The translations under genes were made by a program, and so were the position numbers. Of a DNA stretch of 64,000 nucleotides, positions 8,466 to 64,000 are shown piece by piece. The stretch's first letter is position 1. Each line of letters starts with the position of its first letter. The stretch comes from Chlorokybus atmophyticus (taxonomy: Eukaryota > Plantae > Mesostigma and Chlorokybus algae): NCBI GenBank assembly GCA_009103225.1, contig RHPI01002714.1, positions 41,329 through 105,328 of the forward strand. Reading direction: 5' to 3'. The notes beneath the pieces were generated by a model. The model was not told the DNA's origin. It saw only the letters and a program-made list of their open reading frames with translations, and did no database searches.

Positions 8466-8533
8466 CATTGTACAAAGGTACCATTTCAATGGTACCTTTC
8501 AATGGTACCTTTCAATGGTACCTTTGTACAATG
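8466..8533. repeat. Perfect 20-bp inverted repeat enclosing 13-bp tandem units (TCAATGGTACCTT)
   Basis: CATTGTACAAAGGTACCATT (8466-8485) and AATGGTACCTTTGTACAATG (8514-8533). Lies in the divergent intergenic region upstream of the transposase. Confidence 0.9.
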
Positions 8534-8822
8534 CCTATACCTTTTGGCAAAGGCATCTTCGTACCATTGAAACGGTTCAATCAGAATATATATGTATATA
8601 AAAATATCCAGAGACTCACCCTGGACGTGCAATGGCTCGATCGTACCATTATAATGGTACGACGGAGCCAGTGACTGGCGGCCAAGTTTCCCGCCTCTGG
8701 CATGCAGCGGTAGCGGTAGCGGTGGCGGTGGCGGTGGCGGCGGCGGCGGCGGCGGGTGTGCGTGTTGCTGGATATGATGCAGGTTACATTGGCGACACCT
8801 GTGTCGACGTTAGTAGTGAGAT

Positions 8823-11800: not shown

Positions 11801-11946
11801 AAAAGCGTCGAGGCGGTCCACATTTTGATGTCGTGACTCTGGAGCAAGTAAAAGGCATTGTCCAGATGCTCCCCATGTTTGACAAGGACAGCGCCCGTGT
11901 ACAAGAGGGCAAGTATTGGGTGAATGTTCACTGCACTTCCACATGA
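8823..11946 (+). pseudogene. Plavaka-family transposase, intron-containing (copy A, frameshifted near 9010)
   Basis: N-terminal Zn finger LCPYCHMRF...H...C. Motifs HPSTGDWW, ILYSDKTTL..GKRSGYPLMASLAN, RVFPALANYISDL, CDVC, PDAMHVLGGIIDHL, KMHQLTHF...G..DWFSANRMEQTH...K resemble Plavaka/CMC-type transposases. A 13-bp deletion relative to copy B shifts the frame. Confidence 0.8.
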
Positions 11947-12149
11947 CATATGTACTTGTCTTACTACTCTGAGTTTGGAGCATATCAGTCAGTTAGGCAT
12001 TGCTAATCGTATGCTAAGACTTTTGCATGTGGACGTGTACAATACCGGGCAGCTGTCACTGCACAACTGTCACCACAATCGAATGATCCATGCAACATTC
12101 AACAATCAGTCCGCCGTGTGGCATTAAGCATCAATACAGTGCACCACAC

Positions 12150-13877: not shown

Positions 13878-14404
13878 GCAAAATAGGAATCGGCACGGCT
13901 GCCCACCAACTGAGCGAGACTTTAGGGTACGGGCATCAATTTAGGGTTGCCAGCTTACGAACCCTAAATGGGTCAAACTTCACGTGAAGCACGACTGTAC
14001 CTTATACGCTATTGCAGTACCATGCATGGTACTGCATCAAAATGAATGGTACTCCATCTGTTAATGGTAGTACAGTACAAGGATACTCGCATACTACCAC
14101 GATCGTAGAGACAATACTGTGCTGTCATGCCATGGAACCCAGAGCGCTGTCCGAGTTTGTTGCTGTCAACCACGCTCTAAACCAGCGAGGTATGCAAGCC
14201 ATGCACTGACTCATGCGCCGGGCAGTCATCATACACATGTACAGCCAATGCTTCTACAACAGCAGATCTCCTGTGCAACATGCACCATGCTGCAACTATA
14301 CATGTACCTACATGGTTCACAGGAAGCCAACACAAAACTACAATACATGCACAAATAGCATCAAGGCGGGGGCCAAATCACCGCCGACACGTTGGCGTCT
14401 TGCA

Positions 14405-15373
14405 TCAGGCGTGGCGACCAAAATGGGTGAGGTTGCTTGCAGAATGGACACGCTTGTAGATTCCTTGATTTATTTTTGCCACAGTCTTCTGATGTGCTAT
14501 GATGCAGACATGGCACATCGCTTTCTTGCAACAGGGCGTCTCCCCATCCGCTGGGGGGGGTGGCTCTTCAATGCGACAAATCAGCACACATGGTGCACGC
14601 GGGTGTGCAAGCTGCCTCTGCCACCAAACTCTGTTATCGCGTCGCAGGCGTAGCGACTCCCATCTGAATGGCGCAGCATAACGCTCCACTGCCTGCTCGA
14701 TCACCTGACGCCCATCTGCCGCCATACACCACCTGCTGGTCTTGGTGGTCTTGTCCAGCATGCGTTCATCCAGGCCCTCGACATGGCTGTCGTCACTCGT
14801 GTACTCCCCCGCATCGTCATTTTCTTCGAGCTTCCACAGAATCAGCTCGACGTGCCGTATGACATACAGCCACTGCCAGCCAAAGCATGCCAAGTACAGC
14901 TCGAATGGTTTTACTTGCCACCCAGTATGTTTGCTCAGGTAGTGGCACACATCTCGACCCGCATTAGTCGACATCGACAGGTACATCTGCTGCAGCAGGT
15001 CGAAGTTCTGCTCCGCAGATAGCTCTTGCACATTGCCGGGTTGCTGCGGCAGCAACAACACCATCATATCGAGGACGGCGAGGGGCAACAACGTACTACG
15101 GATGGCCATATCGTGTATGGGTTCCAACCACGGCCAATCCCCAGAGGTCTGCTTAGACCGCATTCCCCGCGTTTGCTCCCACTTATTGCAAACTTTCGTC
15201 ACCCACCTCGAGGCATGCCGCATGCGGTGATGCAGCGCGTCTTGGGCGTACTGTAGGGTGATCAACTCCTTTGCACTACGAGTAAGCCCCCCAAAGCGTC
15301 TGCGCGTCGGTGCTTTGAGCTTAGGCAGCTCGTGCCGCACCGGCTGTCTCTCTGGACGATGCTGAGCAGCCAC
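14405..15373 (-). CDS. Cargo ORF of unknown function (322 aa)
   Basis: Long uninterrupted ORF with protein-like composition inside the TIR-bounded element. No motif recognised. Confidence 0.45.
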   Translation of the reverse strand: MAAQHRPERQPVRHELPKLKAPTRRRFGGLTRSAKELITLQYAQDALHHRMRHASRWVTKVCNKWEQTRGMRSKQTSGDWPWLEPIHDMAIRSTLLPLAVLDMMVLLLPQQPGNVQELSAEQNFDLLQQMYLSMSTNAGRDVCHYLSKHTGWQVKPFELYLACFGWQWLYVIRHVELILWKLEENDDAGEYTSDDSHVEGLDERMLDKTTKTSRWCMAADGRQVIEQAVERYAAPFRWESLRLRRDNRVWWQRQLAHPRAPCVLICRIEEPPPPADGETPCCKKAMCHVCIIAHQKTVAKINQGIYKRVHSASNLTHFGRHA

Positions 15374-43316: not shown

Positions 43317-43632
43317 TCAGTAAAAAGGAGGGTAATCGACATTGAAACCTATCGCTTCCAGCAACAGCCTGCCTACATGTTCAGAGTAAGTAGGTGGAAT
43401 AGCATTCTTGATTTCCGATTCCGCATCCATCCACTCCACCAGCATGGCAAACTGCCACCCTGCAAGCGTACCACGGCAAGATGCTTGGCCGTATACCGGG
43501 TACATTTGCCTCTCCCCAGGTAGCAACTGCCGGCGCTGCTCCGGGTGGGTGGCCAGCTCTCCAAGTGCAGAACCAGTGTGGTTGCATTCTAAGTCTGAGC
43601 GCAGTGGAGGGTTTGTTTCGAAGATGCGATGG

Positions 43633-43678
<46 letters not shown>

Positions 43679-45026
43679 CCAACTTGAACATGCTGCCACA
43701 CAGCTTCAGGTGAGTTGTCATGTGTCCTGACGCGCCTGCGACATTCTCTATCACCCATGCCTTGCCGCTTGACTGCAACTTGGCTCTTATGGGGTCAATC
43801 AGGTTAACGTGATCCCATCGATATCCGTATGCGGACCGTTGTGTCGTGGGAATGGCTCCACTAAGAGCTTGGCATGGAGGACTTGCCCACACTGCATTGT
43901 ATGCTGACAGGTCAGCGCCCATTGCATCCATCTGGGGGAACTTGAATGGATATGCCGGCTGTGGCTTAATGTCTATACCCTCAACATCAAACCCAGCCCT
44001 GTACAGACCCGTAGCAACGCCACCGGCACCACAAAAGAGATCCAATGCGCGTGGCCTGTAACGTCTACCGCTTGAGTCGCATGGTGTGCGAGTTACGAGA
44101 AGGGGTGGTGGCCTGGGCCAACGATCGAGCTCGCGACCAGGCAAGTCTTGCAGTCTCAGACAGCTTTGACCACCAACTCGAACCATCACTGCAACGACAT
44201 CTTGCATGTTGTAACCCTCACGCACAGCTGCGATGTTCCAGTTTTTCAACAAGATGTGGTGCAGCCGCGGATCCTCATCGTAATTGTCGTACTTGATGGT
44301 ATGTTTTCCTGAGCCACATGTTTTACTGAGCCAGTGCTTGCGTGAACACGCGCGCGTACATCACATACTCTGCATTATTTGGACACATGTACCTGTGTTG
44401 GCATTGAAAGTGATCATGCGGCCTGCATACCAGGTGCTCATTCCAGGCCAGTATACCACGACGCGGCTTGCTTCCGAAGACTGCCCCTCATCAACAACCT
44501 CCTTTCGCCACGCAGTTATTATCGCGGTATCGTCAACTGCGTCAACTACTGCTACATTCCCCTTCAACATTGAAGAGTGAGTTGCTTACGTATGAGAGCG
44601 CTGTTTGTGCGCCAGGACAGGACAGTTCAACTCACTTTGTTGTTGTGATCATCTTGGACTGTGGACTTGCCGCGACCGTTGCGCGCGAGCTGACGTCGCA
44701 CCACATCACACTCCTGCCCATCCTGATATGCTCCAGGCCGGGCCCAAGGCAGGTGATCCATGGGCTCGCCGTCCCACTCAAACTTGGAGAGCGAGCATTG
44801 CAGGCAAGTGCATTCCTCGACAAAGAAGTCTGGCTTCATGCATTTTGCTAGAAGCCTGCACTGCCTCACATTATCTCCCCGGGCCTTATGGTGCCAGCAG
44901 GCTTCATAGAAGCCATACCGCTCACTATACAGCTTGCACTTCTCTTCATGCTGTTGCAGCCGTTTCAAGTTGCCGTTTTCTAACCAAGTATGCTCTGCAG
45001 AAACTGCACACCTTGACGCCGCGCAT
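43317..45026 (-). pseudogene. Cys/His Zn module-Tudor-C5 DNA methyltransferase, diverged paralog in the En/Spm element
   Basis: DLFCGAGG, WASPPCQ, IENV, RHRIFE, NAIPP. Tudor VVYWPGMSTWYAG...GKHTIKYD forms after removing intron 44309-44392. Carries a 36-nt (TA)n in-frame insertion and an apparent +1 frameshift at ~44981. Confidence 0.85.
43635..43673. repeat. (TA)n microsatellite inside the MTase coding sequence
   Basis: 39-nt AT run translated as YIYIYIYIYIYIY just before RHR. Confidence 0.95.
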
Positions 45027-45296
45027 ACTGCCGCCACGCAACTTACCATTCAAACCCTAGTAGCTGATGCACTTCACGGAAGAAAAGCTGGAGCACGTAC
45101 GAAAATTACGGAGCACATCCGGATTGAAGCCGCGGCTTATACTTGATCTAGCTTTCAATTTGTGATTGACGGTTCCAAACTCTAGTTCTACAACAGCGAT
45201 GTTAGAGCGGCGGCGAAGGCGGCGGTATCAGCGGCGGCGGCGGCGGTATCAGGTCAGGGCTCTAGATAGTTTGGTGGTTGTATGCCAGGATAATAG

Positions 45297-48200
45297 TTGA
45301 CTAAACATCTTTGTAGCATGAGCTACAATCGCAGGTGTTTCTGCAAAGATTGCCAAGGGAGCAAAGTGTTCACACACAAGCACATCACTAGGGCCAAAAA
45401 CCATGAGTACCATGGCACAAAGATGTGGATGGGCACTCCTAAAGCTGTTGAACCGCAATACTGTGATCTTCTCGAACCCGATGAACTTGAAGAAGCTGAC
45501 GCTGTTATTGCTGCTGCATCCTCGCACATGCTGTCAGGTACAAGAGTAATCTTCCTGAGTTGGTGTACTTCACCAACAGGCTTTCTGATTACCAACCTTG
45601 TCTGCTTCAGATGATGCTGTCCATCACACTGAAACACTTCATGCATGGAACTACGCTGCTGAACAACTGCACCCAGCCACGCCATCGCAAACGAGTGTTG
45701 CATCCCATGTCAATGTTGCACATCACATGCGCCCAGCAGGTTCGACCTAATCTAATTGCAAGTTGATTGCTTACGTCATTGTCCATGCGCCAGTGCATTT
45801 ATTTGCGTTTGCAGGATGTCATCCGTGTGATCATGGGGAACAGAGCGAATTGCACCCAGCATTCTCTGGAAGTGAGCATCATGTATTGCGAGGACATCAA
45901 GGTGCCAGAACTCCAGAATACACAGTTCCGAACGAGCATGATATGCCAGCGCACTCCCCCTCAACCGCTGATCAAGTACATGCGGAGCAAGTTGATGGTG
46001 ATGGTGATGGCGTAGAACAAGACTCCGATACCGATGTGGAGTCGCAGCAGTATGACACTCATGGTGATGACGATGCAATGCTGCTTGACAAGGTGAATGC
46101 TGCGCTGTTGGACAATGCAAGCAACCCTATCGTTGCCGGCTCTCGTACAACCCCCTTGGGCATTTCCATGCTGCTATTGGTTCTCGCTCGGCTACATCGA
46201 ATACCCTTCAACTTTATGAACAAACTGCTAAGGTTGGTGGACAAGAGGTTTGCAAAATTATACAAAACACATTCTGCAAAGACATCAATGTCCAATTTCC
46301 AATTGAACTTGACTTTGTGTGCCAGGTTGGTGCGTGATGTTGTTTTGCCCAAGGAGAATCAGATGCTAGGCAGCATGCAAGAGCTACTAAAATGCCTTGC
46401 AAGCCTCAACATGGGCTTCCACGCGTATGACGCCTGTTGGTGTGACCAGATGGTGTATTATGGCCGACATGCCAACAGGAAATTCTGCAAAGGTCAGCTA
46501 TTGTAGCATTTCTTGTCTGATTGAGTTGTCATGGGATCACCTGTCAGCATGCAAACTTCCTATGGCCTGCAGTCTGCAAGGCCCCTCGCCACCGCAACAT
46601 TGGAGGTCGACAAGTTCCTTGGAAGATTGCACGTTACTTTGACGTGCCTGCTGCTCTGAGGTCTCTTTACCTTAAGCCTAGTGTCGCTTTGGAGATTACA
46701 GAGCACACCAATCGCAGTGAGGATGGGGTTATAAGATTGATACACGGTATGTATATGGCAGTGTGGATTGACAAGTTGATGCCCAATGCAGCCTGAATTC
46801 TTATATGTTTACTATTATTCATGTGGTTGCTGCTGTCAGACTCGCCAATGTTCAAGCATACAGAAGAACGCTACATCCGGTTTATCAAAGAACCGCGTAA
46901 TGTGCGGCTGGCAATGTTTATTAACGGGATGAGCTCTTTCAAAGATCCGCACAAAGGTAGTGATTGTGCCTTTTACCTGTGCTGTCATTGCAGTGTGTAA
47001 ATTCACCGTTGGCATTGATCGAGATGTTTGTGGACTTGCAGGGACTTATGAATTTTGGCTTGTCACAATCTCTGTGCTGAACCTGCCCATTGCCAGAATG
47101 CACAAAACCGACACCTACCTTTCTAGCTACGGTGATACCTGGTCCCAAACAGCCACAGAATCTACAGGCCTATCTCAAGCCAATCATTGACCAATTGGGA
47201 ACCCTTTGGGAAGATATGATTTCAATGTAGTTTGAACAAGCCAGCTCTCAAAAAATTAGACATGCTCTCAAACTGCTTTGGATTGGAATGTGTAGGGCAT
47301 CTCAGCTGCTGGTGTTTGTTGTAGGCATCGACATATATGACAGCCACCGCGACGAAGTTTTCTGGTGCAGATCTATCTTGGAGATTGTAATCCATGATTA
47401 CCCAGGTACGCAAGCAGCAAGTGTTGGCCATCAGTGTCTATGAATGTACTATCTGACTGGTATGGCAACCATGTTTGCCTTCTCTAAAACATGTAATGAT
47501 GGTTGCGCAGCTCTGGCAAAAGCAGCTATGTAGATGGCTCATGGAGCCATCTTTGGCTGTTCCAAATGCGAGTGCAGTGGAGAACATGTGGAACTCCTCA
47601 AAAAGGTGATTTATCAAGGCTATTGCCGGTACTTACCAGATGACCATCCCTACCGAGTTGATGAGCGTTGGCCCCAACCAGAACACAGACCTCCACCTCC
47701 CATGCGGACTGCAGAAAGTGTGTACCGGTGAGCAATCAATCATTTGACATAGCTGAACGTAGCTATGTCAATCAAGCATCACCAATGGATGCCATGTGAT
47801 CAGGTACGCCATGACATCCCGCAACAGCAGCGACCACTTCATTCCAAGAAACATCCTTCAAAGTCCTCCAGAATCCTTGGCCTAAGCTGTTTTCACGACC
47901 TTCCCTATTGGATGCCTTTACAAAAATCTGTAAAAGGTCATGTGATTGGCCCTATGCACATTTTTGCCAATCTCGCAACTAATTTGGCCAATCTGCTTGC
48001 TAGATTGCGCGACAGCAATGAGACTCGAGAAGATCTGCAGCAGCAAGGTCGTATGCCAGAACTCTGGCTACAGGTATTGCAGGCTTATGCGACACTTGTG
48101 ATGACTGCCTGCCAACTCGTGTGACTTTGTGATGATGCGTTGCAGACAGAGATGATGGCGAAAGACGGAAAGGAAGTTGCAGTTAAGGTCAAACCTCAGG

Positions 48201-49968
48201 CTCCATGGGCAATGATGGATGCAGGGCTGGTTGAGCAATTACTCTCATGCGTGAGGGTTCCAAGCACTTTCGGCTCTAAGCTGCAATCTTTCACCAAGCA
48301 TTTAGGTGAGACAACCACCATGGTTCTCAACTGCGTGGAAATCAACTCAGTGTCCTTGCATTGCACATTGTGTCTACTTAACAATCTGATGTAGTGAGCA
48401 CACAGGCTCGATGAAATCGCACGACAAGCACATCTTGTGGACCGTGATTTTCCAGTACGTGCTGCGCTCTGCTCATGACATTGGAGAAGATCAGAAGAAA
48501 ACAATCCTCAAACTCTGCGACATCTATCAGCAGCTGACTGCATTGGAAGTGAAGCAGTCACACCTTGAAGAACTGCAGGTTAGGGCTTTAACTATACCTT
48601 CCATGTGTATGCTTAGCTTCTACAGGTTGCATGACTTGCGGTATTCATCGCAGGTGCTGGTGCATGAGGCACAGTCTAAGGTGGAGCTGCTCTTCCCGCG
48701 GACTTCGCTCACAATGATGCTGCACCTCCTTGGCCATCCACCAGAGCAATGCATGTGGCTTGGTCCGGTGCGCGATCACTGGGAGTGGGCCGACGAACGA
48801 TTTATGCAGTGGGTGAAGCGCATGATTTTTGCCAGGCAGCATGTGGAAGCAAGCATCTGCAAAAGGCAAAGGCAGTCTGGGCCAACTGAAAGTTGCATGC
48901 AACCTTTTTCGTACTCTCGTTCTTTGACTTGTGTTAAATGCAAGTTATGTCTGCAGATACTCCATCCAGCTCATGTTGAACACTTACATGGACACCTTGA
49001 AGAGGCTTTTCGTCGGCATCAGTTTGCGATCGGGCAAGGAGCGAGATGATGATGACTATGTCCTCTGCGGGCGCAGACACCGTGTTGAGTGTGAGAAAGA
49101 TAGCAAGATCAGGCAGGAGCTGGAGTGGTGGTTGGCCGAAAATGACGATGAGTACAGGCAGCTAAAAGAGTAAGTTGCTTTAGCAATCGTTGTTTGGTAC
49201 GCAATGTCCCCTGCATATTATGAGTCCACAATGGGTTGGTAAACAGAGAATTCAGTCGGGCTGTTCAAAAATGGCGGAAGACACGCGAAAAGGCCCAAGC
49301 ACAAGGGAATCTCGTGACCAGTGACATGGAGCACATGACTGAGCTGCATCATTGGCGTGGACCTGATAGGGAGCTTACAAAACACGAGATGGAGCTGTTG
49401 AGTGGTCCCATTTTTCCAAAGTACATCATGAGGTACTACAGAGCGCGCTACAAGGACATTGGCCAGTTCAGAGCGGAGGACACTGAGAAGAAGCTCCGCA
49501 CTATGGACTGCGGAGTGTTTACCGTTGGGCGTGACTCAAATGACCCAACCAAGAAGATCCACTGGTATGGCAGGGTGCAATCTTTTTATGTTGTCGTGGT
49601 AGCCGGTTGGGAGCACCAGCTCCTCAGAGCGAGGTGGTACATGAGCATCCAGGTGCAGCACATGGGAGGCTTTGCAATCCTGAGGAAAGACAAGCCCCGC
49701 TTTGCAGAACAAACCTACCTTGATTGCAACCTAGTAAGTAGGTGTGTTGCAGCAGTTTTTGCGAGTTGATGNTGATGACTGAGTGAGATTGGGTGATACA
49801 TGTCCTTGCTGGCAGGTCAAGGGCCAGTGGTTTGAGGGTATTGACCCGTATGACACCAAAATAACAGTAGCGCTTGTTAAAGACAGACAAAGCCTCATGC
49901 GCCAAGGTGTGCACCGCGACACTCCTGTGAGAGCAGATTTGTTTGTGAGAATCTGGGTGTCCTCATAG
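45297..49968 (+). pseudogene. En/Spm Tnp2-type transposase (Transposase_21, DUF4218-like and DUF4216-like regions), many introns, damaged
   Basis: LPKEN...HAYDAC, RYFDVP, RNVRLAMFING, NLP, GPKQP, GCSKC, RYLPDDHPYR, LPYW, MH..AN, KSHD, HLLGH, LGPV...ERFM, WYGRV...LLRARWY. In-frame TAG at 47531. Confidence 0.85.
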
Positions 49969-50777: not shown

Positions 50778-51897
50778 AGCCAGTCCCGATGGAACTTGAT
50801 GATGAGGATGCCAACGGGGAACGTCGCCAGCACCCAAGTCAGGGAACCACGACGGCTGCAGCAGTTGTGGACCTCGTGGACAGCGATGATGACAGCATGG
50901 TGCTGGACGGGTCGGGTGCTGAAGTTGAGGCGTCAACACTTGTGCCCCTGTTCATTTACCCTAGTGCAAATGCACGTGATGCGGTGCCACTGTTTGAAGC
51001 GGACAGAAAGTTGCTGGACGGCAGACAGGAGCTCAACGACACCGTGCTCCACTTCTTTTGCAGGTATGAGCCTTGCGTTGTTGGTGTTGTGCAGCTGTGT
51101 CATGTATGTGTCACGCACGCGCAGATATAAGGAAGAAGAGGTCGTGGGCAGAGCTGACGGCATTCACGTGAGGCTGTTCAACCCGCACTTCTACACCGAG
51201 ATTGTGCACTGCCATGAACAACATAACTGGCACAGTGGCAATCACAGGATAGATAGGTACGAGAACGATCCGTTTTCCAAGAACTTGCTGGCAGCAATTG
51301 TCAACCCACACAGCCGGTGAGAGTGAAGCCAAGTTCTCGCACTGCAGTGCTGCTGTACTTGCTCGCATGGACTCACTTTGAAGTCTGCATGCCACAGGAC
51401 TCACTGGAGTCTGCTGCTGGTGTGCAATCCTGGAGGGGAACTTGGAAGCAACACGCCCCCCTTGATCGTCCATCTCGACTCCCTTGGTCTACATCGCAAC
51501 GTCGACGGATCAATGCGCGCTTATCTAAACTATATGTGGGGCAGGAAGCATGGAAGTGAGTCGCAACAGCGCTTCTCTCCCGCAAACGTCCCGCTACTTG
51601 ATCCACAGGTAGGACATATTGTTTTGGCCTGGTGATGAGGTCACGCCCTCTCCTGGCAGAATCCCTATGTAGATGCACATACGTTTGGTTCGCCCGCATT
51701 GACATAGCGTGTTCGTGCAGGTCCCTCAGCAGAGGGATGGAGTTGCGTGCGGGCTGTTTGTCATGGTTTACCTTGACAAGTTGATAGATGGGATACAAGC
51801 TGGTCCAATCGAGCAAAACGCCCCGATATTTCAGCAGGTACAGCTCATGCATTGGAATGTCTCCATATGGCAGCTGCCTAAGTGCAAAGCCGTGTAG
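50778..51897 (+). CDS. ULP1/SENP (peptidase C48) SUMO-protease exons, spliced in frame to the PHD-C5HCH exons
   Basis: ELNDTVLHFF, FNPHFY, THWSLLLVCNPG (His), HLDSL (Asp), VPQQRDGVACGLFV (Cys). Introns at 50704-50777, 51064-51124 and 51609-51720 are GT-AG and phase-compatible. Confidence 0.85.
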
Positions 51898-52658
51898 GTT
51901 GACATGTGTTGAGCAACCAGATGGTGTGGGTGTGTGCAACGCAGATGCAAAAGGATTGGTTTCGTCCAAAAGAGGCAGACAGCTTAAGGAGACGACTGCG
52001 AACACTCATGGACAGCATGCCAGCACAGCAAACGTCACGGCGGATGTGAAGTAGCAGGCGGTTGGTACATAGCTAAATTGTAGTAAAAAGCATAGGTTCA
52101 TTGGCCAGCTGTGTAATAGTAGCCCAAGCTAACTTTGTGCTTAATAGAATTTAGAATGCAAGCCATTAGCATGCTTGCCTTTTCAATGGCACTTGGGACT
52201 TGGTGTAATTTCACAGCGGCAGTTTTGCCAAGTGGTGTTGAACATTCAATGGCACTTGGGACTTGGTGTTTTTCATGCTATATGTTCCCTGAATATGACG
52301 GTGACTATGCAATGGTATTTAGAACTCGGGGTTTTCGCGGCAAGCCGTAGCCAGCACTACACACGCTGGGTGATTATTCTGCTGTGTGGGCACTGACAAT
52401 TCATTGTACCATATCGTTCATCAAGTACAACTTGACTGACCTTGAATATGCACGAAATACTCAGTTTGAAATTCAAAGTGTACGGGTTGAAACGAGGTTC
52501 AGTGGTATGTACGTTGAATATGAATGCGTCTTGCGGGTGAAGAACGCTGTTCCTTTTGGCAGGGATGGGACAGAAAGTACAATAACCATTGGATATTCAC
52601 GGACAAAAGGCGTGAAACGGATCAAGTCATTAATATTCAGACGAAATGGCGTGAATAA

Positions 52659-52690
52659 TCAGGACTCGGGGGTTCCCAAAATTACCGGTG
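52659..52690 (-). repeat. Right TIR of the En/Spm element
   Basis: Reverse complement is CACCGGTAATTTTGGGAACCCCCGAGTCCTGA. Confidence 0.85.
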
Positions 52691-53475
52691 AAATACCCAC
52701 TGACATCAGCAGGCTCAGATCATTCTTCGGGCTTGTAAACTACTATCGTCGGTTTGTGAAAGACTTTAGCAAGTTGAACAAACCTTCAAATAACCCGTTG
52801 AAGGAAAAAACCCATAGGCAATGATGTAAAAATTGCCAGCAAGCATTGAGCTGATTAAGGAGAAACTCGGCGATGCACCAGGACTGAGAACATCTGACTA
52901 CAACTAGCAGTTCATCCTCCATATAACTTGGAGCAAGTTGGGCATCGGTGCTGTGGTATGCCAAAAAAATAAATGACGGAGCAGAATATGTGGTTGCATT
53001 TGCTAGCGAAAGCAACAACAAAGCTAAAGGCAAATACAGCTCCTATAAAGGGGAATGTTTGGTAGCAGCATGGGCATTTGTACCTTTTAGGCCTCTCGCC
53101 TTCGGAAGGCGTTTCAAGCTGTTAACTGACCATCAACCTTTCGAGTAGTTGCTTACCAACAGCCACCTAATCGAAAAGCATGCTCGCTGAGCATTAATCC
53201 TACAAGAGTATACTTCATCATATAGCACCCGGCAGGGTCGGCCAACATGGACACAAACAGATTGACCAAAATCCTGTTCCTGACATCAAAGATGAGAGTG
53301 AGGCTCGGCATGATTACGAGCCAGATACCCGTGTTGCTGCAAATAGTGCAGCACTACTCGTCGTTGCGGGGTGTGCAATGATTGAGTACGAGCAAGTGGT
53401 GGACACCCCCACGAACAGTGAGGAGACAATCCGCTGTGCAGTTGAGGCTGAGGGGGTCACCCCCGTTGAGGACGA
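52691..53475 (+). pseudogene. Gypsy RT/RNase H remnant, copy B (continues at 56061-56316)
   Basis: PTDISRLRSFFGLVNYYRRFVKDFSKL and LLTDHQP. Confidence 0.85.
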
Positions 53476-56060
53476 TGTTGGAATGGACGATGACAAGCAC
53501 ACACATGCACAAGAGCACGCCACAACACCAACGTCAGGAGACCATACAAGACCATCTATTGCCATCATGTCCACGGGTTTTACACCCGCTAGCTATACAT
53601 GCTTCTACTCCAAAACTACAGCATCTAGCACACAACCATAACTTGCGTTCGCATTTGCTCCACGTAGCTAGCTTCAAGAGCTTTCCAACAAGCTGCAGCA
53701 CACGCCAAATAGTCAAGTAACCACCGAGATACAATTATTGTACTACAGCGCCTGAAAGTCTCCAGACTCTGGACTCGCTGACGCGCCTGGACCTTTCGAC
53801 TTGAGTCGCTGGAACCGTCTAGCGCCTATTCCTATGCAAAAGGCAAGCTGACCGATTGACCTAGATGTAGGAATATCCTCAACACTCCCACGCGGGCATC
53901 TTAGCCTTCACACCTTCGCCTTTGTAGCTCATGTGCCGCTAGCTCTCGTACTAGCCTTGCTCCTCTTCTTGTTTGCAATTGCCAAGAAGCCTTTCACCTT
54001 CCCTTCTTGCTCCACCTCTTCCACCATGCTTCCCAGAAGCGCTGAGAATCGGTTCGCCTTGAGGTATTTATCCTCCACATCACCTTGAGCCTCCCGGTAG
54101 ACCTTCAACCCCTCGCTCTTTTGCTGCACATGCTCGCTGCCGCCCTGCGCCTGCTGCACCTCTCTTTCTGAGATAGCAACTCCAACCCTAGTAATAGCTC
54201 TTGGCTCTCTTCCTTAGCCACCTTACTTTCCACCACTTGCTTGGAGCTCCTTGGAGCTCCTAAGGGCTCTGAGCTCGTCCGCTTCACAACAATCTTCAGT
54301 GCCTCCTTATTGCCTTGACCTTGTGGTGTCTTGAATGCTCCCTTCTTAACTACCTTTATCGCTGCAACATCCTTGTGCGTCTTGTCCTCCTCAACGTAGT
54401 AGAGTCCGGGCTTGTTAATGCCTACTACATGTGTAACGCCCCCAAGTACTATCCTAGCCTTGTCCGCATCGATCACAACTCTAGCACCAACCCTCGTGGC
54501 TACACGTACTGAGAACAAACTAGCAGATGCGCCTGGCACATACAGTACATGTCCAAGCACAACCTTCTTAACTACACCACCAACCTTGCACCTGAGGTTG
54601 GCATCTCCCTTTGCAACAGCGTCCACCATCTTCTTGTTCCCAAAGTCCACCGTGACTGGCTTGGACAAACGAGTGAGGTTGATGAGCTTGCTCCTATCGC
54701 TTGTGAGATGCTTGCTTGCTCCCGTATTCAGCACCCACCCAGGATACTTCGCTCCTTCATCAGATGCATGAAAAGCACATACCCGCTCCGCACCACCAGC
54801 CGTCATTCTCTTCCACTTGGGACACTTGCTCACATGATTACGCTCCGCGCAATGCCAACACTCCTCGTTGCTGCCTCGAGCGCTCTTCTTCTCATGTGCA
54901 TGCCTCGATGAAGTCTCGAATGCCACACCACCGGGTTGAGCTCCGTTCTCTACTTCATCCTCTTTCCTCAAGCGTTGCTCCTCTTGAAGAAGCCGTGGTG
55001 TCACCCCATCAAACGTCAAGAACTCCGCTGACGATTCCAAAATTGTGACAACAATCTTATACTCTTTGAACAAACCTGAGAGCACAGCCCAAACAAACTC
55101 CACCTCTTTAAGCTCATGGCCAACACAAGCAAATCTCTCCACAACGCGCGCGCCATGAACTTGACAATGGCCTTTCCGCTCTCATTGCGTAACGAGTTGA
55201 GCTCCTGTCTCAGCTGCAGTCACCTCGCCACGTTACGCGTCTTGGAGTGGTTCTCAAGCTTCTTCAGAAGCTCCCTTGCATCCTTGCACTCCCTCACTAG
55301 CACCAAGTGATGATTCGCCATGTGCAAGCCAATGAGCGCCAAAGCCTTCCTCCCTTGACGCCCAAACACTCGCCTCACCAACGGGAGCATTCTTCTTCGG
55401 GTCTATATACTTCCACAACTCTTTGTGGGCTAGTAGCAGCTCCATCTTCACGCTCCAGGTACTGTAGTTGTCAATGTCTAGTGAGTCGATCGCAAACTTG
55501 ATGCCGTCCATGCTTGTGACCTTCGTTGCCCCTCTGCTACTCGCAGACCTTGCAACCTACTACTCTCACAGCATCCACACCTACTCACACAATTCAACTC
55601 AGTACAACCTACACAAGCATGTGTGGGCCCATAACCTGTTGAGATGGATGATGACAAGCATACACATGCACAAGTGCACGCCACAACACCATCATTGGGA
55701 AACTATACAAGACCATCTATTGCCATCATGTCAACGGGTTTTATAACCGCCAGCTACACATGCTTCTACTCTAAAAGCTACTGCATCTAGCACACTCAGC
55801 TATAACCTGCGCTCTAATTTGCTCTACGTAGCTAGCTTCATGAGCTTTTCAACAAGCTATGGCACGCCAAATAGTCACGTAACCACCGAGATACAAGCAT
55901 TCCACTACAGCGCCTGGAAGTCTCTCTCCGGACTCGCCAATGTGCCGCTTAAACCTTCTCGCGCCTGGACCTCTCGACCGAGTCGCCTGGAACCTTTTAG
56001 CGGCTATTCCTATGCAGAGGGCAAGCTGACCGGCTGACCTAGATGTAGGAATCCCCAACA
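53476..56060 (-). mobile_element. Non-autonomous gag-protease copia, copy B
   Basis: LTRs at 53476-53884 and 55637-56060, PBS at 55623-55636, perfect 5-bp TSD GACGA. Confidence 0.9.
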
Positions 56061-58189
56061 GACGATACCATCAAGGGCGATATCTGACTGGATCCGGAAG
56101 CCCTGATGTATCTGAGGACCGGAATTTACCCACCAGCTGCAAGTTCGCTAACAAAAGACCGCGTTTGACGCCGGTCTCAGTGCTACGGTTGGAATCAAGA
56201 CAAGGTACAAGATAATACAAGACGGCACCATAAAAATGGTGCCACCACTATTAGACAGAGAGGCGGTTGTGCGCAAGCTGTACTATTGGGACATTTTGGG
56301 GTGAAGCGCACACTGGCACTACGTCGCAAATTTTACACGGTGACTGACTAAGGACTGAGGGACTGACTGGTGCCTGAGCCTGCCTGAGCCTGCCTGTCGC
56401 TGCTTGAAATATTACTTTTGGACTGATGAGTTTGCCGTTGGCTTAGATGGACTGACGCAGACGGCCGCGGGCCGAAAGTGGTTGTCAGTGGCACTAACCG
56501 GCCGAGCGTTGTCAACCAGTTACCCTTTGGTCGATATGCACAGACGGCCGTTAGCCGGTAGTTACGGACAGCTGACAGCAATAGCCGGCACTTTCTTTGC
56601 CGTTACACTGCTGTTAGTATGTGACCCTTGCCGCTTGACAAAAGTTGGCAATTCTTGCCGTAAGCCAACACTAACATGCCATGCAGCTTGTACAAACCTT
56701 GGACTGATTGTTTGGTCTTGCACCTAAAAGCCCACAATATATACAATGTATGGGCAGTGGTGAGAGTATGTCCACTTACAACTGAGCAGCCGACTTGCGC
56801 ATGAAACTGCTCTATAACATTGAGTCTAGCTGTCGGACTCATGCGCAGCTTGTCAACCCGTGGTGCCTGCCTCAGAACTCCTCCTCAAACCCCCTCCTCC
56901 TGTTCCTCCTCCGACGAGTCTTCTGCTTCAACGCCGGAGTCATCTTCATCCGCTGCCTCGATCGCTGACAGTACAGCGGCTACTTCGTCCTTCAGCTTGA
57001 ATGTCAGCGCCTCGCCGTGCACGCGCATGCGCTTGATGGTCGCTTTGAGAGTGACCACCTGCATTTGGTAATGCTGTAAGAGTGGCGTGCTGCCAGAGGA
57101 GCTAGCCCATCAGCATACACACGCTTACCTCGTCTTCCGCTTTGTTGCACTCAGCCAGGCAGACAGTCAGCCTGCCGCGCTGCTCTTGGTTCACTCTAAC
57201 CAACATGGCAATCTGCAAGCATACTGCTTACTTACCGCTGGAAACATTAAACGAGGTCATGGATTACCCGTTCGTGGTACTCCACAGCTTCTCTTTTGCG
57301 ACTTGTGAGCTCCCGCAAGTAGAAATAGGCTGTGCATTTGCGAGATTGGTCATGCTGTTCATGTGCATGACACTGGAGGTTGTGCATGAGGGTGTGCATG
57401 TCGTATTGACAATGTATGTCAAGTGCAAGATACTTGAGGCTGTGCATGTGCAAGATAAAAGAACCCTAGCATGTGGCAGTGACAGTGCATCGTAACCCAC
57501 CTTGGTTATGCCAGTCTTGTTTGGTCCCTTCAATCATGTCGCCGTGGTCGCAACTGCTGGTGGGTCGGATTTTCTTACAGGCAGTATTGTGGTGTGCCTT
57601 TGCCCACTCGAAGGGGGAGCCCTGTAAGATATCGCCCGAGTCACTGTTGGTATTGGATGTGCCCTTGGTAGTCTTGGTGGGGTTTGACACCGAGGACACC
57701 CCTCCGGCACCCTGCCCGCCCTGTGCGAACATGGAATTCATCCCGGACCTCGACCACAATGCCCACTACGCCCCTGGCAGCGCCGCCAACGATCCTCCAA
57801 ATGCCACATACCCTCGGCATCACGCCCCTGTAAGGGCATAGCTTGGTGGAGCTATCAATGGTGTTTTCATGCGCAGGGGGACTGACATTGCCAGAGTTGT
57901 CAATGGTACGAATTGCCATTGCCATTGTACAAAGGTACCATTTCAATGGTACCTTTCAATGGTACCTTTCAATGGTACCTTTGTACAATGCCTATACCTT
58001 GGGGCAAAGGCATCTTCGTACCATTGAAACGGTTCAATCAGAATATATATGTATATATATATATATCCAGACTCACCCTGGACGTTCAATGGCTCGATCG
58101 TACCATTATAATGGTACGACGGAGCCAGTGACTGGCGGCCAAGTTTCCCGCCTCTGGCATGCAGCGGTAGCGGTAGCGGTGGCGGTGGC

Positions 58190-58221
<32 letters not shown>

Positions 58222-58288
58222 GTGTGCGTGTTGCTGGATATGATGCAGGTTACATTGGCGACACCTGTGTCGACGTTAGTAGTGAGAT

Positions 58289-61200
58289 ATGGGAGTCCTT
58301 TGTCCGTATTGCCACATGCGCTTCGCCACACGCAGCTCGGTCTACATGCACATTATTAGCAGCAGGGTGTGCAAGCAGATCAAGCTGTATGTCGGCCAGC
58401 GTCCATTACAGTACGATGCGGGTCATGTTGAACCGGGGAGTTCGATCCAGGATGCTCACATGCTTGATGCTGAAGGATTCCTCCAGGAGACACACGCACA
58501 GCAGCAACAGGAGGAGGAGGAAGTGAACGAGGGCTTTCGATGTGTGCGTGTGCCTGAGAAACCTGTGGCACGCCAACATGGAAGTGGAGGCGTCCCTTCG
58601 CACGCGTCGGAATCCAGGTGGTATGGCTCGGAGCATGCTCTTGCAGTGGCATTCGTGCAGTGCAACAACGGCCAAGGCCTGTCGGCCTCCGACATGGGGC
58701 GGATCATCAAGTGCATCCGAAATGCACACTTCCTGACGGAAGAGCTCCAGTGGGAGACCGGTGTGCATGTGGCCAGCTACCTCCGGACCACGATTGCTTT
58801 CTCTCAGTCTGAGGTGTGTTCACGGTGTGCGGTGCATGTACTTCAACCATCAGAGCCATGTCACATATGCACATGCGAGTGTGCTGCCGTATTAGAACTA
58901 CATGACGGCTGACCTGCGCAAGCCTGGAGACCCTGAGGATCAGGACATCTGCGTCACGTATATGCCGGCCAAGGTCTGTGAAATGCAGTACTTAATGCAG
59001 TATCAATGCGGTATCTATTCTGAGGCCAGCATAGTAAGTAATGCTCTTGGTCGGAGCAGGTATGGCTCGCGCGGTTGTATGGCAATCCACATGCCGCCAA
59101 TGGCTTCAATCTCAAGTACACTGATGACGAGCACAGCTTTGGCCATCCTTCCACGGGCGATTGGTGGAAGGATGTGGAGGTGGATTTGAGGAGAGAGGTG
59201 GGGGAAGCGTCCTACTTGGCGCCTGCCATTCTGTACAGTGACAAGACCACGCTGGACAGCGCGGGCAAGCGCTCTGGATACCCTCTAATGGCATCGCTTG
59301 CCAACTACAGTTGGGACATGTATGCTAGCAACATGGGGGTTGTTATGATAGCGCTTCTGCCGGTGGTTCACGCAGTGGCCGGGCATCCCACCTGGGCGCA
59401 GGGCAAGGAGTCGTTCTCCATTCGAAAACGTGAGATTTTTCATGACGCTTTGAATGTAGTGTTAGGGGATGTGAAGCGGGCGAGTTGGGAAGGTCTGCAG
59501 CTCATCGACCCGAATGGCATCGAGCGTCGTGTGTTTCCCGCGCTTGCCAACTACATCAGCGATTTGCAGGTAGTGGGCATGAATGGTTGTAACCGGATGC
59601 AGCCTGCCAGCAAACAGTGCATGGAGGATGTTGTCAGTAGAACATCTGAGTTTGTCGTGTTGTAGGAGACTGCCACACTCGCACGCACTGTGTCGGGCAA
59701 CCAAACACGACATCCTTGCGATGTTTGTCTCGTCACCAAATCAGATCTGTTGGAGATGGATGAGGACCGGGAATTGAGAACCGAGGCCTTCTACACACCA
59801 GCAATACGTCAGCTGCGGGCGGACCTGCATAGCGGTGTTAGGAATGCACGCCAGACAGCCAAGGCTTTCAAAGAGCAGCACTCCATGCATGTCGAGGAGG
59901 TAATGGTCAAATTACCGGCATTCGTGAGGATGAATGGCTTTCCGTGAAACCAGGCAATGTGGTTTGGCAACAGAATGCACTGTGGGGTTGGCGACAGTCG
60001 CGGGTGCCGGGAGCTGACTGCTACTCTCGTCTTGCCCCTGACGCAATGCATGTGCTGGGAGGCATCATTGACCACCTGCTTGCTGCTGTGTACGACGCCG
60101 CGAAGGAACGAATGCGTCCATCCACGAGACAGATTCTGCAGGCCAGGCACATCTTTGGTGTTGCTTTTGTGTTGAACACAAAAGCCAACAACACGTGCTC
60201 ACGAGCAGATGTGCACAGGCTGAATGCATGCAAGGCGACTCTGCGGGTTTCGCACTTCAAGGCACCCACAAGCACAGTAGATTTCTTCCTGTCCGACCAC
60301 TCCTTTCAGGTGGTGGAGAAAGTGGCGGTGCTGCAGCTGCTGCCGGTCCTCGCAGACGGTTTGCTGCTCGACAGTGAGGGCAACGATTTCTTCACCATTG
60401 CTGCCGCATCGCTTGCCCAGTGGAACAAGAAGTTGCTGAAGGCGCATGAACACACAAGAGAGACCCTGACCACAGCCGACAACGAGCTGGCTGCCTTCAA
60501 AGCTGCAGTGTTGCATCCGCTACTGTCGTCATATTCTGCACAGAAGTCAGGTTGGAAGATCGAGAAGATGCATCAGCTCACTCATTTTGGGCCGGCAATT
60601 GTCAGCAGTGGACACCCAGATTGGTTCAGCGCCAACCGCATGGAGCAGACGCACGCCCAAAATATCAAACGGTGGGCGCGTGGTGGCAACAACCGGGACT
60701 ACCAGGCACGTATCCTGAAGGCATGGAGCTGTGCGGAATATGTGAGAGAGGATGGCATGGTCGTGGATCCCGAGATGCGCTCGGTCATGGCGCAGGCGCG
60801 GCAGCAGTGCTGTAATGTCATGGAGAAGACGGACAAGTTGCTACGGATGGATGTGCTGACAAGGAGGGAGTCCAGCCCGTACTGGAGCGGATCTGCGCGT
60901 AGCCGCCAAGTCGCCTTGAAGACTCCATTTGCCGACAAGCTGCCTGCCACCCTGGACAGCTGGTTGAGGAGGGAACAACTGGAGTTGGCCGACGGGTGGC
61001 GTGCTGTTCGCGTGGTGAACGGAGGCGCAGCGGTGTACATGACATCAGGAGTCAGCATGGCGCGCGCAACTGGGATGTTCCATGGGCGGCCTTGGTTCTC
61101 TACACTTGAGTTGGAAGGTGATGAGGACGGTGTGAACGTGACGTGGTGGGCTCAGGCACTCCTTTTTCTGCGCGTGGTGGTGTGGGGTGGTAGCGGCGAG

Positions 61201-61431
61201 CGCGTGTGGAAGGAGGTCGTGTTTGTCCGCTGGTACACGAAGCTGGATGTGACGAGCGACACAAAGTGCATCGCTCTGGAATGGGAAAAGCGTCGAGGCG
61301 GTCCACATCTCGATGTCGTGACTCTGGAGCAAGTAAAAGGCATTGTCCAGCTGCTCCCCATGTTTGACAAGGACAGCGCCCGTGTACAAGAGGGCAAGTA
61401 TTGGGTGAACGTTCACTGCACTTCCACGTGA
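58289..61431 (+). CDS. Plavaka-family transposase, copy B (no frameshift seen)
   Basis: Same motifs as copy A, but the 13 bp missing in A are present, keeping the Zn-finger exon in frame. Confidence 0.75.
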
Positions 61432-61634
61432 CACATGTACTTGTCTCACTACTCTGAGTTTGGAGCATATCAGTCAGTTAGGCATTGCTAATCGTATGCT
61501 AAGACTTTTGCATGTGGACGTGTACAATACCGGGCAGCTGTCACTGCACAACTGTCACCACAATCGAATGATCCATGCAACATTCAACAATCAGTCCGCC
61601 GTGTGGCATTAAGCATCAATACAGTGCACCACAC

Positions 61635-63363
61635 TCAAGCCTCATAGTTCCATGACACAGGAGGGTAGTCACAGCGCATATCCATTGTTTCAAGCATGAG
61701 ACGCCCTATGCACTCCGCCATTGCGGGAGGAACTGCATTCGCTATGGAAACGGCCGAGGTCATCCATGGCACTCCCAGCGCTGTTTGCCACGCAGCAATG
61801 CCGCCCCTGGTGCTTGGAAGGCCATAGACCGGGTACATCTGCTGTGGCGCGTTTGATGTCACGATTGTCTTCTTCGCGCTAGCGGACAGGTGCGGCGATA
61901 GCAGTCCAACTGCCTTGCCCGCGTGCGAGCAGCGTGCTGGTGGGGTAGCTACCACTGGCTGTGTCTCAAACAGACGGTGTCGAAAAATTGATAGGCCAAA
62001 CATCGTGCCACAAAGGGACAGATTGAGTCTGAATGAGGAAGCTGCTCCTGGCACATTCTCAATCACAAACTTGACCTGGCTTGCAAGCAGCAGACGTCGG
62101 ACGAGCGGTATCATATCCTGGTGTCTCCAGTATGTGCCATGTGCCGCCCGTTGAGGTGCCGGGATAGCACCTGAATAGACCTGGCATGGTGGACTGGCCC
62201 AGATGAGCTCGTACTCGCTCAGCTCTCCTGCGCTCAGGGTGCATACATTGCGGTGTATGAAGGGCAGCGGGTACTCAGAGGAGGGACTTATGTCCATCCC
62301 GGTCACGTCAAAGCTTGCGTGGTATAGACCGACACTGGCACCGCCACCGCCGCAGAATAGGTCGAGTGCCCTTGGTCTGCGTGTGCGTCCCAGCTTGTTG
62401 TCAAATGGCGTGTATGTGGTCAAGGCTGGCCGTGGTGCTGGCCAGGGACTAACAATGATGCCGTCCGGGCTTACTTTGCGACTGACGTTCTCCCCTCCGG
62501 CGCGCAGAACATGGCGTGCCCCGTCAACTGATGTGTACGCGAATACGTTGTGCCCTTTGAAGTTGATGGTTTGTGGTCGATCACCGTCATCGAATACTAT
62601 ACGGTGCTGCCCTGCAAAGACATTTTCCATTGCACCATGCATATATGATGCGTCTTCAATCTCGCACGCCACGGAGCGATGCTGACCTGACGCTTGCTTG
62701 AATAATTCCACAACGCCCGCATACCATTCCCCATCCAGCGGCCAATGCACCATGACACTCACACCGATCAGCTGCTCGCATCCCAACTTAACTGCGTTCC
62801 GCAGCCGATGCAGTGCGCTGTCCAACGGTCGATGGTCTGCCTCCTCTACAGCGGCCAGGGGATGGAACTGCCCACGCCCACACCGTGCAAGACTGCTCTG
62901 AATGCGACAACAGCTTCAACATGCATGAAATAAGCATACGCCCAACATAACATGCAGTGATACGTCGCGGTCCACTCTTGTGGATTACCTCCACAGCATC
63001 CACCACCTGTCCACTAACCACATGTCCCGGTGTTGTCCATGTGAAGAAGCGCATGGGTTCCCCTCGCCACTCGAAGCATGAGCGCGAGCACGATTCGCAC
63101 ACGCACTGCACGCAATGGAAAAACTCGGGTTCCTTGCACAGCACTTCGCCGAGGCGGCAGCCAAACACGTCGACATTGTGTGTGGTGTGATGCCAGCAAG
63201 CAGCACTAATATCGTGGCACACTGTCTGCACTCGCTGGCATTCGGTCAAGTGTGCTCGCATTTGCTGCCTACGGCCATTGGCACATTCGTACGCATTGCA
63301 TTGTGGGCACACCAAGCATGGTCTCCTAGGTGAGGGTGATTCAACTGCTGCCGCCGACATCAT
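61635..63363 (-). CDS. Cys/His Zn module-Tudor-C5 DNA cytosine methyltransferase, apparently intact copy
   Basis: Continuous 396-aa Tudor+MTase frame containing a 75-nt in-frame intron (62612-62686). Motifs DLFCGGGG, WASPPCQ, IENV, RHRLFE, NAVPP are all intact. A Cys-rich exon upstream can be joined in frame by a GT-AG intron (e.g. 62846-62939). Confidence 0.88.
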
Positions 63364-63917
63364 GCAAAATAGGAATCGGCACGGCTGCCCACAAACTGAG
63401 CGAGACTTTAGGGTATGGGCATCAATTTAGGGTTGCCAGCTTACGAACCCTAAATGGGTCAAACTTCAAGTAAAGCACGTGTACCTTATACGCTATTGCA
63501 GTACCATGCATGGTACTACATAAAAATGAATGGTACTCCATCTGTTAATGGTACTACAGTACAAGGATACTCGCATACTACCACGATTGTAGAGTATTAA
63601 TGTGCTGTCATGCCATGGAACCCAGAGCGCTGTCCGAGTTTGTTGCTGTCAACCACGCTCTAAACCAGCGAGGTATGCAAGCCATGCACTGACTCATGCG
63701 CCGGGCAGTCATCATACACATGTACAGCCAATGCTTCTAACAACAGCAGATCTCTGGTGCACCATGCACCATGCTGCAACTATACATGTACCTACATGGT
63801 TCACAGGAAGCCTACACAAAACTACAAAACATGCACAATTGGCATCAAGGCGGGGGCCAAATCACCGCCGACACGTTGGCGTCTTGCATTAGGCGTGGCG
63901 ACCAAAACGGGTGAGGT

Positions 63918-64000
63918 TGTTGAAGGACTAGCATGCACATGTAGTTGAGGCAAGCATAGATGCACAGAGACAGAGCTACCGCCACCAGAGCATACACAAG
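63918..64000. mobile_element. Probable start of another copia-type LTR inserted into copy B
   Basis: Homology to copy A stops abruptly at GAGGT and the new sequence begins TGTTGAAGG, like the other copia LTR ends here. Only 83 bp are visible. Confidence 0.55.

Follow-up and report, generated by a model that had tools for sequence, protein, structure and literature searches.

Can a DNA transposon carry a cytosine methyltransferase that is fused to its own chromatin reader? The question is raised by a stretch of 64,000 nucleotides from the alga Chlorokybus atmophyticus (GenBank assembly GCA_009103225.1, contig RHPI01002714.1, positions 41,329 to 105,328 of the forward strand; hereafter the window), in which a minus-strand gene at 61635–63363 encodes a Cys/His-rich putative zinc (Zn) module, a Tudor-like domain, and a C5 cytosine methyltransferase (MTase) domain. 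An earlier note, made from the sequence, had described this gene as an intact, spliced passenger of a DNA transposon. In this study, we therefore analyzed the gene (copy B of a repeated unit), its near-identical counterpart (copy A), and a diverged paralog (paralog C) in the same window, and we interpret it from its sequence as a transposon-linked, reader-fused orphan DNA methyltransferase (DNMT) of the giant-virus/bacterial type with predicted activity. The features on which the first part of the analysis is built are as follows.

61635..63363, minus strand: copy B Zn-Tudor-MTase gene, apparently intact (open reading frames, splice enumeration, intron 2 common to paralog C)
61638..62393, minus strand: C5 cytosine MTase domain, residues ~145–396 of the open reading frame (motifs, AlphaFold2, Foldseek, PHROG 363)
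62535..62789, minus strand: Tudor-like domain, split by the 75-nt intron 2 (PDB 7de9_A match; kept in paralog C)
62989..63363, minus strand: Cys/His-rich N-terminal exon, putative zinc module (38% identity to the paralog C exon)
43317..45049, minus strand: paralog C Zn-Tudor-MTase gene (MTase 42% and Zn exon 38% identical to copy B)

Results

Structure of the copy B gene and of paralog C

In copy B, the MTase lies in an open reading frame (ORF) of 396 codons on the minus strand (61635–62825), and the Cys/His-rich part lies in an upstream ORF of 191 codons on the same strand (62788–63363) with an ATG at 63363; the reading frames of the two ORFs differ. Splice enumeration gave a best canonical junction for intron 1 (donor GAG/GTAATC, acceptor TTCAG/AG, the slash marking the splice site), and the resulting 520-codon coding sequence (CDS) is distributed over three predicted exons (62989–63363, 62687–62897, and 61635–62611) with predicted introns of 91 nt (62898–62988) and 75 nt (62612–62686). 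The second intron, recognized by eye, is a GT..AG interval that is in frame and free of stop codons; its excision gives ...ASGQHRIVFDDGD, and KQASG then meets QHRIVFDDGD. Splicing of the copy B introns is a prediction, and the model was checked against paralog C.

Paralog C was found by a Pfam scan of the other ORFs of the window, which returned a DNA_methylase match at 43317–44252 on the minus strand. The MTase domains of B and C are 42% identical (E = 2e-78) and their Zn exons 38% identical (E = 8e-19), with approximately 10 conserved Cys/His columns, and Tudor motifs (VVVYWP...WYAG... and KHTIKYD...) lie between the Zn and MTase parts of paralog C. Its predicted introns are located at 44562–44635 (74 nt), which has a consensus GTGAGT donor and lies between the Zn and Tudor exons, and at 44309–44392 (84 nt). 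The 84-nt GT..AG interval interrupts the glycine codon that is also split, in identical phase, by the 75-nt interval of copy B; because the 84-nt interval holds a stop codon, it can only be an intron. The 75-nt GT–AG intron proposed in the earlier note is thus upheld in both position and phase, and the Cys/His-rich ORF upstream is likewise confirmed. The four predicted introns of copy B and paralog C are 74 to 91 nt each. Since the architecture and the intron are common to B and C, they are ancestral to two lineages that are now approximately 40% identical.

Within 62612–62686, the opening codons of the intron repeat those that open the next exon (GQHRSV versus GQHRIV), and the 75-nt intron resembles a short insertion with a direct repeat of approximately 12 nt at its flanks. 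Directly 3′ of paralog C (41870–43162), an ORF contains a repeated Glu/Ala/Lys/Gln-rich, coiled-coil-like segment and has a weak match to Retrotrans_gag (E = 5e-4).

The methyltransferase domain

The ORF at 61635–62825 contains MTase motifs I (DLFCGGGG), IV (SPPC), VI (ENV), VIII (RHR), and IX/X (AVPP) together with a short variable region, as the earlier note had stated. In an alignment of 95 sequences, all the invariant and nearly invariant columns were kept in copy B, among them those of the catalytic Cys, ENV, and RHR. An AlphaFold2 (AF2) model made with this alignment had a predicted local distance difference test (pLDDT) score above 90 over residues 145–396 of the ORF, and a Foldseek search with the MTase model placed M.HaeIII (1dct), DNMT3A/B, DNMT1, and Dnmt2 on top, with a probability of 1.0 and identities of 12–20%. 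In addition, the domain matched PHROG 363 ("DNA methyltransferase") over residues 6–239 of its 260 amino acids (E = 3e-24). Protein searches returned 4350 homologs at E ≤ 1e-3 from a set of 5.8 billion proteins and 3727 homologs from a representative set of 1.84 billion, all via the MTase part. The number of homologs, the pLDDT, and the Foldseek probability place the MTase homology beyond chance. As judged from alignment and model, copy B encodes a bona fide C5-MTase domain of a compact, prokaryote-type family, and methyl transfer to the C5 position of cytosine is the predicted function of the protein.

Most of the homologs are bacterial or phage-like, approximately 210 to 240 amino acids long, and approximately 40% identical to the window enzyme. 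Copy B departs from this single-domain layout of approximately 220 amino acids in being a 520-codon fusion with approximately 265 N-terminal residues. The best-scoring database relatives overall (P0001 and P0187) are proteins of approximately 448 amino acids with two tandem minimal MTase domains. No DNMT1/3 chain in the PDB matched the MTase by sequence (phmmer, E ≤ 1), and Pfam gave no match to BAH, RFTS, PWWP, ADD, or SNF2 in the Zn-Tudor-MTase gene. By sequence, by the low structural identity given above, and by the lack of these companion domains, the enzyme appears to stand apart from the established eukaryotic DNMT families (DNMT1/3/4/5/6, RID, and ChloroDNMT).

The Tudor-like domain and the Cys/His-rich exon

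A search of the PDB with the Tudor-like part matched one solved structure, 7de9_A, with an E value of 0.0014 when one sequence was used and 2.6e-5 when a profile of both paralogs, B and C, was used. 7DE9 is the Tudor domain of Arabidopsis thaliana PDS5C bound to H3K4me1 (bioRxiv 10.1101/2022.05.28.493846). The match spans only the first half of the domain, and the second half had no matches in the PDB. Candidate aromatic-cage positions (W, WY, and F/Y) are conserved between B and C, as judged by eye. The domain probably has a Tudor-like royal-family fold.

A large-scale protein search with the Tudor part alone returned no matches, and neither a Tudor nor a Zn fusion partner was present among the best matches from the 1.84-billion set. 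The Zn exon matched no Pfam family, and no relatives of it were found in viral and metagenome contigs. Its sole match, L008, is a bacterial contig that looks like a false relative and was discarded.

Kinship with giant-virus enzymes

The nearest relatives of the window MTases (36–48% identity) are longer proteins on giant-virus-like contigs and not the bacterial ones; the nearest metagenomic relatives are P0002–P0006, P0121, P0009, P0010, and P0018. The contigs that encode such relatives also carry a D5-type primase-helicase and a PLOD-type glycosyltransferase (L002), topoisomerase II and kinases (L003), an intein-bearing RNA polymerase subunit and PolB (L005, 245 kb), or SNF2/RING proteins (L007). 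In a library of viral structures, the best match was the C5 methylase of Pithovirus LCPAC201 (A0A481Z4Z4; 35% identity, E = 4e-18), and the next matches had identities of 24% or less.

A neighbor-joining tree based on 202 trimmed columns placed the window MTases within this group; of 200 bootstrap replicates, 162 recovered B and C as sisters, 124 a 21-taxon giant-virus-type clade, and 114 a 13-taxon clade of the methyl-CpG-binding domain (MBD) type. The three nearest neighbors of copy B were inside the giant-virus-type clade in 178 of the 200 replicates. Only members of this clade, the window proteins among them, share an xxPVYG motif and a DYPP C-terminal tail. The window MTases likely belong with the giant-virus-associated clade, and because the bootstrap support is moderate, we take this kinship as likely rather than proven. 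Of the earlier description of the enzyme as a compact MTase resembling those of bacteria and actinophages, the prokaryote type stands (PHROG 363, and not DNMT1/3/5), but the closest kin are giant-virus and not actinophage enzymes.

Many of the nearest relatives carry an MBD (PF01429) inserted between motifs VIII and IX; neither the insertion nor a PF01429 match was found in the window MTases. MBD-inserted C5 MTases are encoded at L002:2874–3716 and L003:8803–9858, and they are also represented by P0002–P0006, P0121, and P0122. In these viral sister enzymes, the MBD occupies the usual site of the target-recognition region, which amounts to a reader-writer layout in a single polypeptide, and we found no description of this layout in the searchable literature. 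They may be single-polypeptide maintenance-type methylases.

Linkage to two transposases

Two different transposases of the CMC group lie beside the two versions of the gene, and two clusters of a short motif lie around one of the pairs.

58289..61431, plus strand: Plavaka-type transposase region, copy B (Pfam Plavaka domain PF18759)
46797..49049, plus strand: CACTA/EnSpm-type (tnp2) transposase remains (Transposase_21 and DUF4218 matches; head-to-head with paralog C)
57903..58117, no strand: left AATGGTACC-type motif cluster, 8 matches (candidate subterminal repeats, just outside the transposase start)
63501..63554, no strand: right AATGGTACC-type motif cluster, 4 matches (just 5′ of the MTase gene)

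The Plavaka domain was detected within 59075–59665 on the plus strand with a score of 82.8 bits (E = 3.6e-23) against a cut-off of 26.3 bits. The MTase gene and the Plavaka region of copy B are convergent, and their 3′ ends are approximately 200 bp apart, which agrees with the tail-to-tail arrangement described in the earlier note. The tnp2 remains gave three collinear, sub-threshold matches to Transposase_21 (E = 1e-4 to 4e-3) and a match to DUF4218 (E = 8e-9). The tnp2-type and Plavaka transposases are not similar to one another by tblastn. Copy B and paralog C thus each lie approximately 0.2 to 1.7 kb from a different CMC transposase, indicating two independent transposase linkages; within the 64-kb window, the linkage to transposases is therefore borne out for two diverged versions of the gene. 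The immediate neighbors of the window MTases are DDE transposases, and the ORFs for reverse transcriptase (RT) and integrase in the window belong to separate elements. Downstream of the tnp2-type transposase, an open segment at 50421–50753 has a sub-threshold match to the Cys-His-rich domain C5HCH of NSD (E = 5e-5).

The ends of the putative elements were searched for in several ways. Around the Plavaka and MTase block, an ungapped inverted scan, blastn comparisons of the two flanks with one another and with the remainder of the window, and a search for exact termini with target-site duplications (TSDs) of 2 to 3 bp all gave chance-level matches only, so that the CACTA-type terminal inverted repeats (TIRs) claimed in the earlier note were not recovered. 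CAC..GTG, TGT..ACA, and CATCA..TGATG are termini reported for these transposon families (PMC12730594), and none of them stood out around the Plavaka block. The same kinds of search found no TIRs or TSDs around paralog C. A 14-nt CAC..GTG pair at 42354/51908 was dropped because it lies inside a coding repeat and has neither a TSD nor further similarity.

The AATGGTACC-type motif (ATGGTAC) has a count of 30 in the window, where 6.8 would be expected, and is concentrated in five clusters. In copies A and B, such clusters enclose the transposase and its MTase neighbor from both ends, and their placement is that of candidate subterminal repeats. The fifth cluster, at 18480–18619, is isolated from any detected transposase or MTase and may be the remnant end of a related element; ORFs near it, at 14405–16850 on the minus strand, had no Pfam match.

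The 12.3-kb repeat and its two copies

Copy B of the gene and its Plavaka neighbor are part of a larger repeated unit.

51642..63922, plus strand: 12.3-kb repeat unit copy B (self-BLAST; copia debris, Plavaka transposase, MTase gene)
2194..14439, plus strand: 12.3-kb repeat unit copy A (self-BLAST partner of copy B)
12150..13877, minus strand: copy A Zn-Tudor-MTase gene (one frameshifting indel; no premature stop, codon by codon)

The two units form a dispersed direct repeat with 97.5–97.9% identity, sharp borders, and different flanks, and no terminal inverted repeats were found at their ends. A tandem unit was ruled out by the discrete borders and differing flanks; the repeat could have arisen either by segmental duplication or by the transposition of a composite element. 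The Plavaka region of copy A has the same segment structure as that of copy B. As only two copies, not independent of each other, are available, the element ends cannot be mapped from them.

The whole window has an observed/expected CpG ratio of 0.71, with values of approximately 1.45 for TG and CA and 0.69 for TA, and between the repeat copies, cytosines in CpG show transitions approximately twice as often as other cytosines do. Such a deamination-type signature is consistent with CpG methylation in the genome; it is circumstantial and names no enzyme.

Other features of the window

Retroelement debris is present at 19–1521, 28261–29661, and 54105–55142 and includes a chromovirus-type integrase with a chromodomain, a copia RT, and a copia fragment with gag and the Pol beta-barrel. 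This last fragment is flanked by long terminal repeat-like repeats of approximately 400 bp that are 81–83% identical (4027–4427, 6187–6605, 53476–53874, and 55637–56052). The introns and the copia/gypsy surroundings confirm that the region is eukaryotic. A tandem array at 37517–38689 has a period of 216 bp, approximately 5.4 copies, and 97–98% identity and lies inside a 562-codon ORF (37436–39124). Runs of N, which are masked or unresolved sequence, occur at 23037–23365 and 28340–28791, and single N at 18293 and 49772; because of the N runs, the overlapping ORFs on both strands there are regarded as artifacts.

Discussion

Starting from the domain content, the intact catalytic motifs of copy B, the conserved intron, the linkage to two transposases, and the giant-virus kinship, the reading that we cautiously favor is that the Zn-Tudor-MTase gene is a passenger gene of CMC transposons, in which an MTase derived from giant viruses later acquired reader modules and introns and acts as a Tudor-guided writer of 5-methylcytosine (5mC). 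The catalytic domain would have been acquired horizontally from the giant-virus branch of a bacterial and phage family of approximately 220-amino-acid enzymes, and the gene would have gained its eukaryotic N-terminal modules and its two short introns after the transfer. The PDS5C/MSH6-like Tudor domain, possibly with the Zn module, may tether the enzyme to nucleosomes marked by methyl-lysine, at which the MTase would write 5mC, probably at CpG. We suggest CpG as the target because the sister enzymes carry an MBD and the locus is CpG-depleted. In this way, the element could influence its own or neighboring chromatin and thereby limit itself or hide from the host.

Several results weigh against this reading. 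Pfam DNA_methylase (PF00145) scored copy B at 19.4 bits, which is below the gathering cut-off of 22 bits, and covered only the N-terminal third of the model; paralog C scored 21.5 bits. The exon pieces had no Pfam match to Tudor or to any other family. AF2 placed strands at the expected positions of the Tudor-like domain, but with a pLDDT of approximately 50 to 60, which we attribute to the lack of alignment depth and to intron-coded residues in the input, and the model of the Zn exon, made from a three-row alignment, had a pLDDT of 45 and was unusable. Of the checks by profile and structure proposed in the earlier note, Foldseek recovered the C5-MTase fold, and DNA_methylase remained sub-threshold. 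The Tudor domain that the note placed upstream of the MTase is backed by the 7de9 match and by its conservation in paralog C, but not by Pfam or by a confident model. Furthermore, TIRs and TSDs could not be defined for either gene block, which makes co-mobility of the MTase gene with the transposase putative, and the MTase copies A and B are not independent insertions because both lie inside one 12.3-kb duplicate.

The most serious alternative, which we nevertheless consider rather unlikely, is that the gene is a decaying one that was either captured or assembled a single time, was amplified with the elements, and now persists as pseudogenes, copy B being open by chance and without function. 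Further results that count against the favored reading fit such decay. Copies A and B of the MTase gene, compared over the predicted exons joined, differ by 6 synonymous and 23 non-synonymous changes, and the ratio of non-synonymous to synonymous differences per site (pN/pS) of approximately 1.2 is neutral; the value for the transposase segments, approximately 0.5, indicates some constraint, although the numbers are small. The gene is broken by a frameshift in copy A, and an in-frame simple-repeat insertion lies within the catalytic domain of paralog C. Both transposase regions are fragmented: the Plavaka coding capacity of copy B is divided into four open segments, of which the first three share a frame and the last is in a different one, by interruptions that may be either introns or decay, and the tnp2 remains consist of several open segments that do not all share a frame. 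The failure to find a homolog of the N-terminal modules elsewhere points in the same direction. Two observations speak for function instead. The CDS of copy B is uninterrupted over its 520 codons; the gene that the earlier note called intact is therefore intact in copy B but frameshifted in copy A. In addition, every catalytic motif, the Tudor core, approximately 10 Cys/His residues, and both intron positions are kept between the 42%-identical paralogs B and C, and retention of the whole Zn-Tudor-MTase layout across this divergence requires long purifying selection on the whole protein.

It is also conceivable, but improbable, that the gene belongs to a domesticated, host family of orphan DNMTs in a transposon-rich region, with the transposases adjacent by coincidence or nested insertion and the 12.3-kb repeat being a segmental duplication. 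The failure to find TIRs or TSDs would be expected under this explanation, the 12.3-kb unit also holds copia debris and ends without inverted repeats, and the window is dense in retroelements. Against coincidence, two diverged paralogs are each approximately 0.2 to 1.7 kb from a different CMC transposase, and in copies A and B alike, the motif clusters lie to either side of the transposase and its MTase partner.

We regard it as very unlikely that the enzyme acts on RNA, in the manner of Dnmt2, or on some other substrate, or that it is a catalytically dead chromatin binder. For orphan DNMTs, it is difficult to tell whether the substrate is DNA or RNA (PMC12344493), Dnmt2 structures were among the fold matches, and the variable region is very short; however, phage members of the family are annotated as DNA methylases, the sister enzymes carry a methyl-CpG-binding domain, and the catalytic Cys is intact, as are ENV and RxR. 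Finally, a fragment of an endogenized giant virus, suggested by the giant-virus genes that are the nearest relatives, is highly improbable and was rejected as an explanation of the locus, given the two spliceosomal-type introns and eukaryotic reader modules, the identity of no more than 48% to viral enzymes, and neighbors that are transposases and retroelements and not viral hallmark genes.

If the transposon-linked Zn-Tudor-MTase is active, it would show that a mobile element can bring along a targeted epigenetic writer of its own, and it would add a route from virus to transposon to host for the spread of 5mC machinery. A wider scenario, which we consider doubtful, is that transposons of two CMC lineages carry a 5mC writer that is active, guided by chromatin, and acquired from giant viruses, that the viral sisters propagate methylation from methylated CpGs through their MBD, and that these enzymes form one mobile reader-writer family across viruses, transposons, and hosts.

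Comparison with known systems

Transposon-encoded cytosine MTases described so far are those of retrotransposons and of a virus-resident Mariner element; in the window, an orphan giant-virus-type enzyme has gained eukaryotic readers and introns and is linked to two kinds of DNA transposase. Mobile elements with their own DNMT include the retrotransposons SymbioLINE-DNMT and SymbioDIRS-Dnmt3 of Symbiodinium and charophyte elements (PMC5890265). The window block resembles them as a putative mobile element with its own cytosine MTase. However, the SymbioLINE/SymbioDIRS elements are retrotransposons for which no Tudor or chromodomain is mentioned (PMC5890265), whereas the putative carriers in the window are cut-and-paste CMC transposons with a reader-fused enzyme. 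Mariner-1_OLpv, which resides in a phycodnavirus, encodes a C5 DNA methylase and an EcoRII-like nuclease (PMC3627910); it is a DNA transposon with a C5 methylase, as in the window, but it is located in a virus genome and carries a restriction-modification-like cassette without reader domains.

Within the same transposase family, fungal Plavaka/KDZ elements carry TET/JBP (PMC12730594), and the red-algal Plavaka/KDZ element PAG2 carries a PF01555 methylase and SET (bioRxiv 10.1101/2025.02.11.637652). These elements also have a DNA- or chromatin-modifying accessory gene, but their passengers are a demethylating dioxygenase or an N4/N6-type methylase with SET, whereas that of the window is a C5-MTase with Tudor.

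Reader coupling is known from a rotifer enzyme. The bdelloid N4CMT couples a methyltransferase domain to a reader, as in the window gene, but it makes N4-methylcytosine (4mC) and is a host gene that is not transposon-borne. N4CMT has been cited as an acquired methyltransferase, and orphan, laterally acquired eukaryotic DNMTs, including a Pithovirus-like one in Acanthamoeba, have been reported without companion domains (PMC12344493). The host enzyme DNMT5b carries Tudor/MBD modules (PMC9998398) and is thus also reader-coupled, but it is an ancestral eukaryotic, SNF2-coupled enzyme that is not transposon-borne. A Tudor-DNMT fusion in itself is thus already known; for a DNA transposon carrying a Tudor-fused C5-MTase, we found no description in open-access papers and preprints.

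Closest in sequence are the giant-virus C5 MTases, which share the core layout, xxPVYG, and the DYPP tail with the window gene; however, they are intronless, many have an MBD, they have no Zn or Tudor part, and they reside in viral genomes, whereas the window gene lies beside transposases. The short bacterial and phage orphan MTases of PHROG 363 have the same minimal domain with a tiny variable region and are approximately 40% identical to the window MTase, but they are single-domain, prokaryotic enzymes, whereas the window gene encodes a 520-codon eukaryotic fusion and has introns. Transposon-borne orphan DNMTs are thus already known as a kind, and the reader-fused version linked to a DNA transposon is, within the searchable literature, new.

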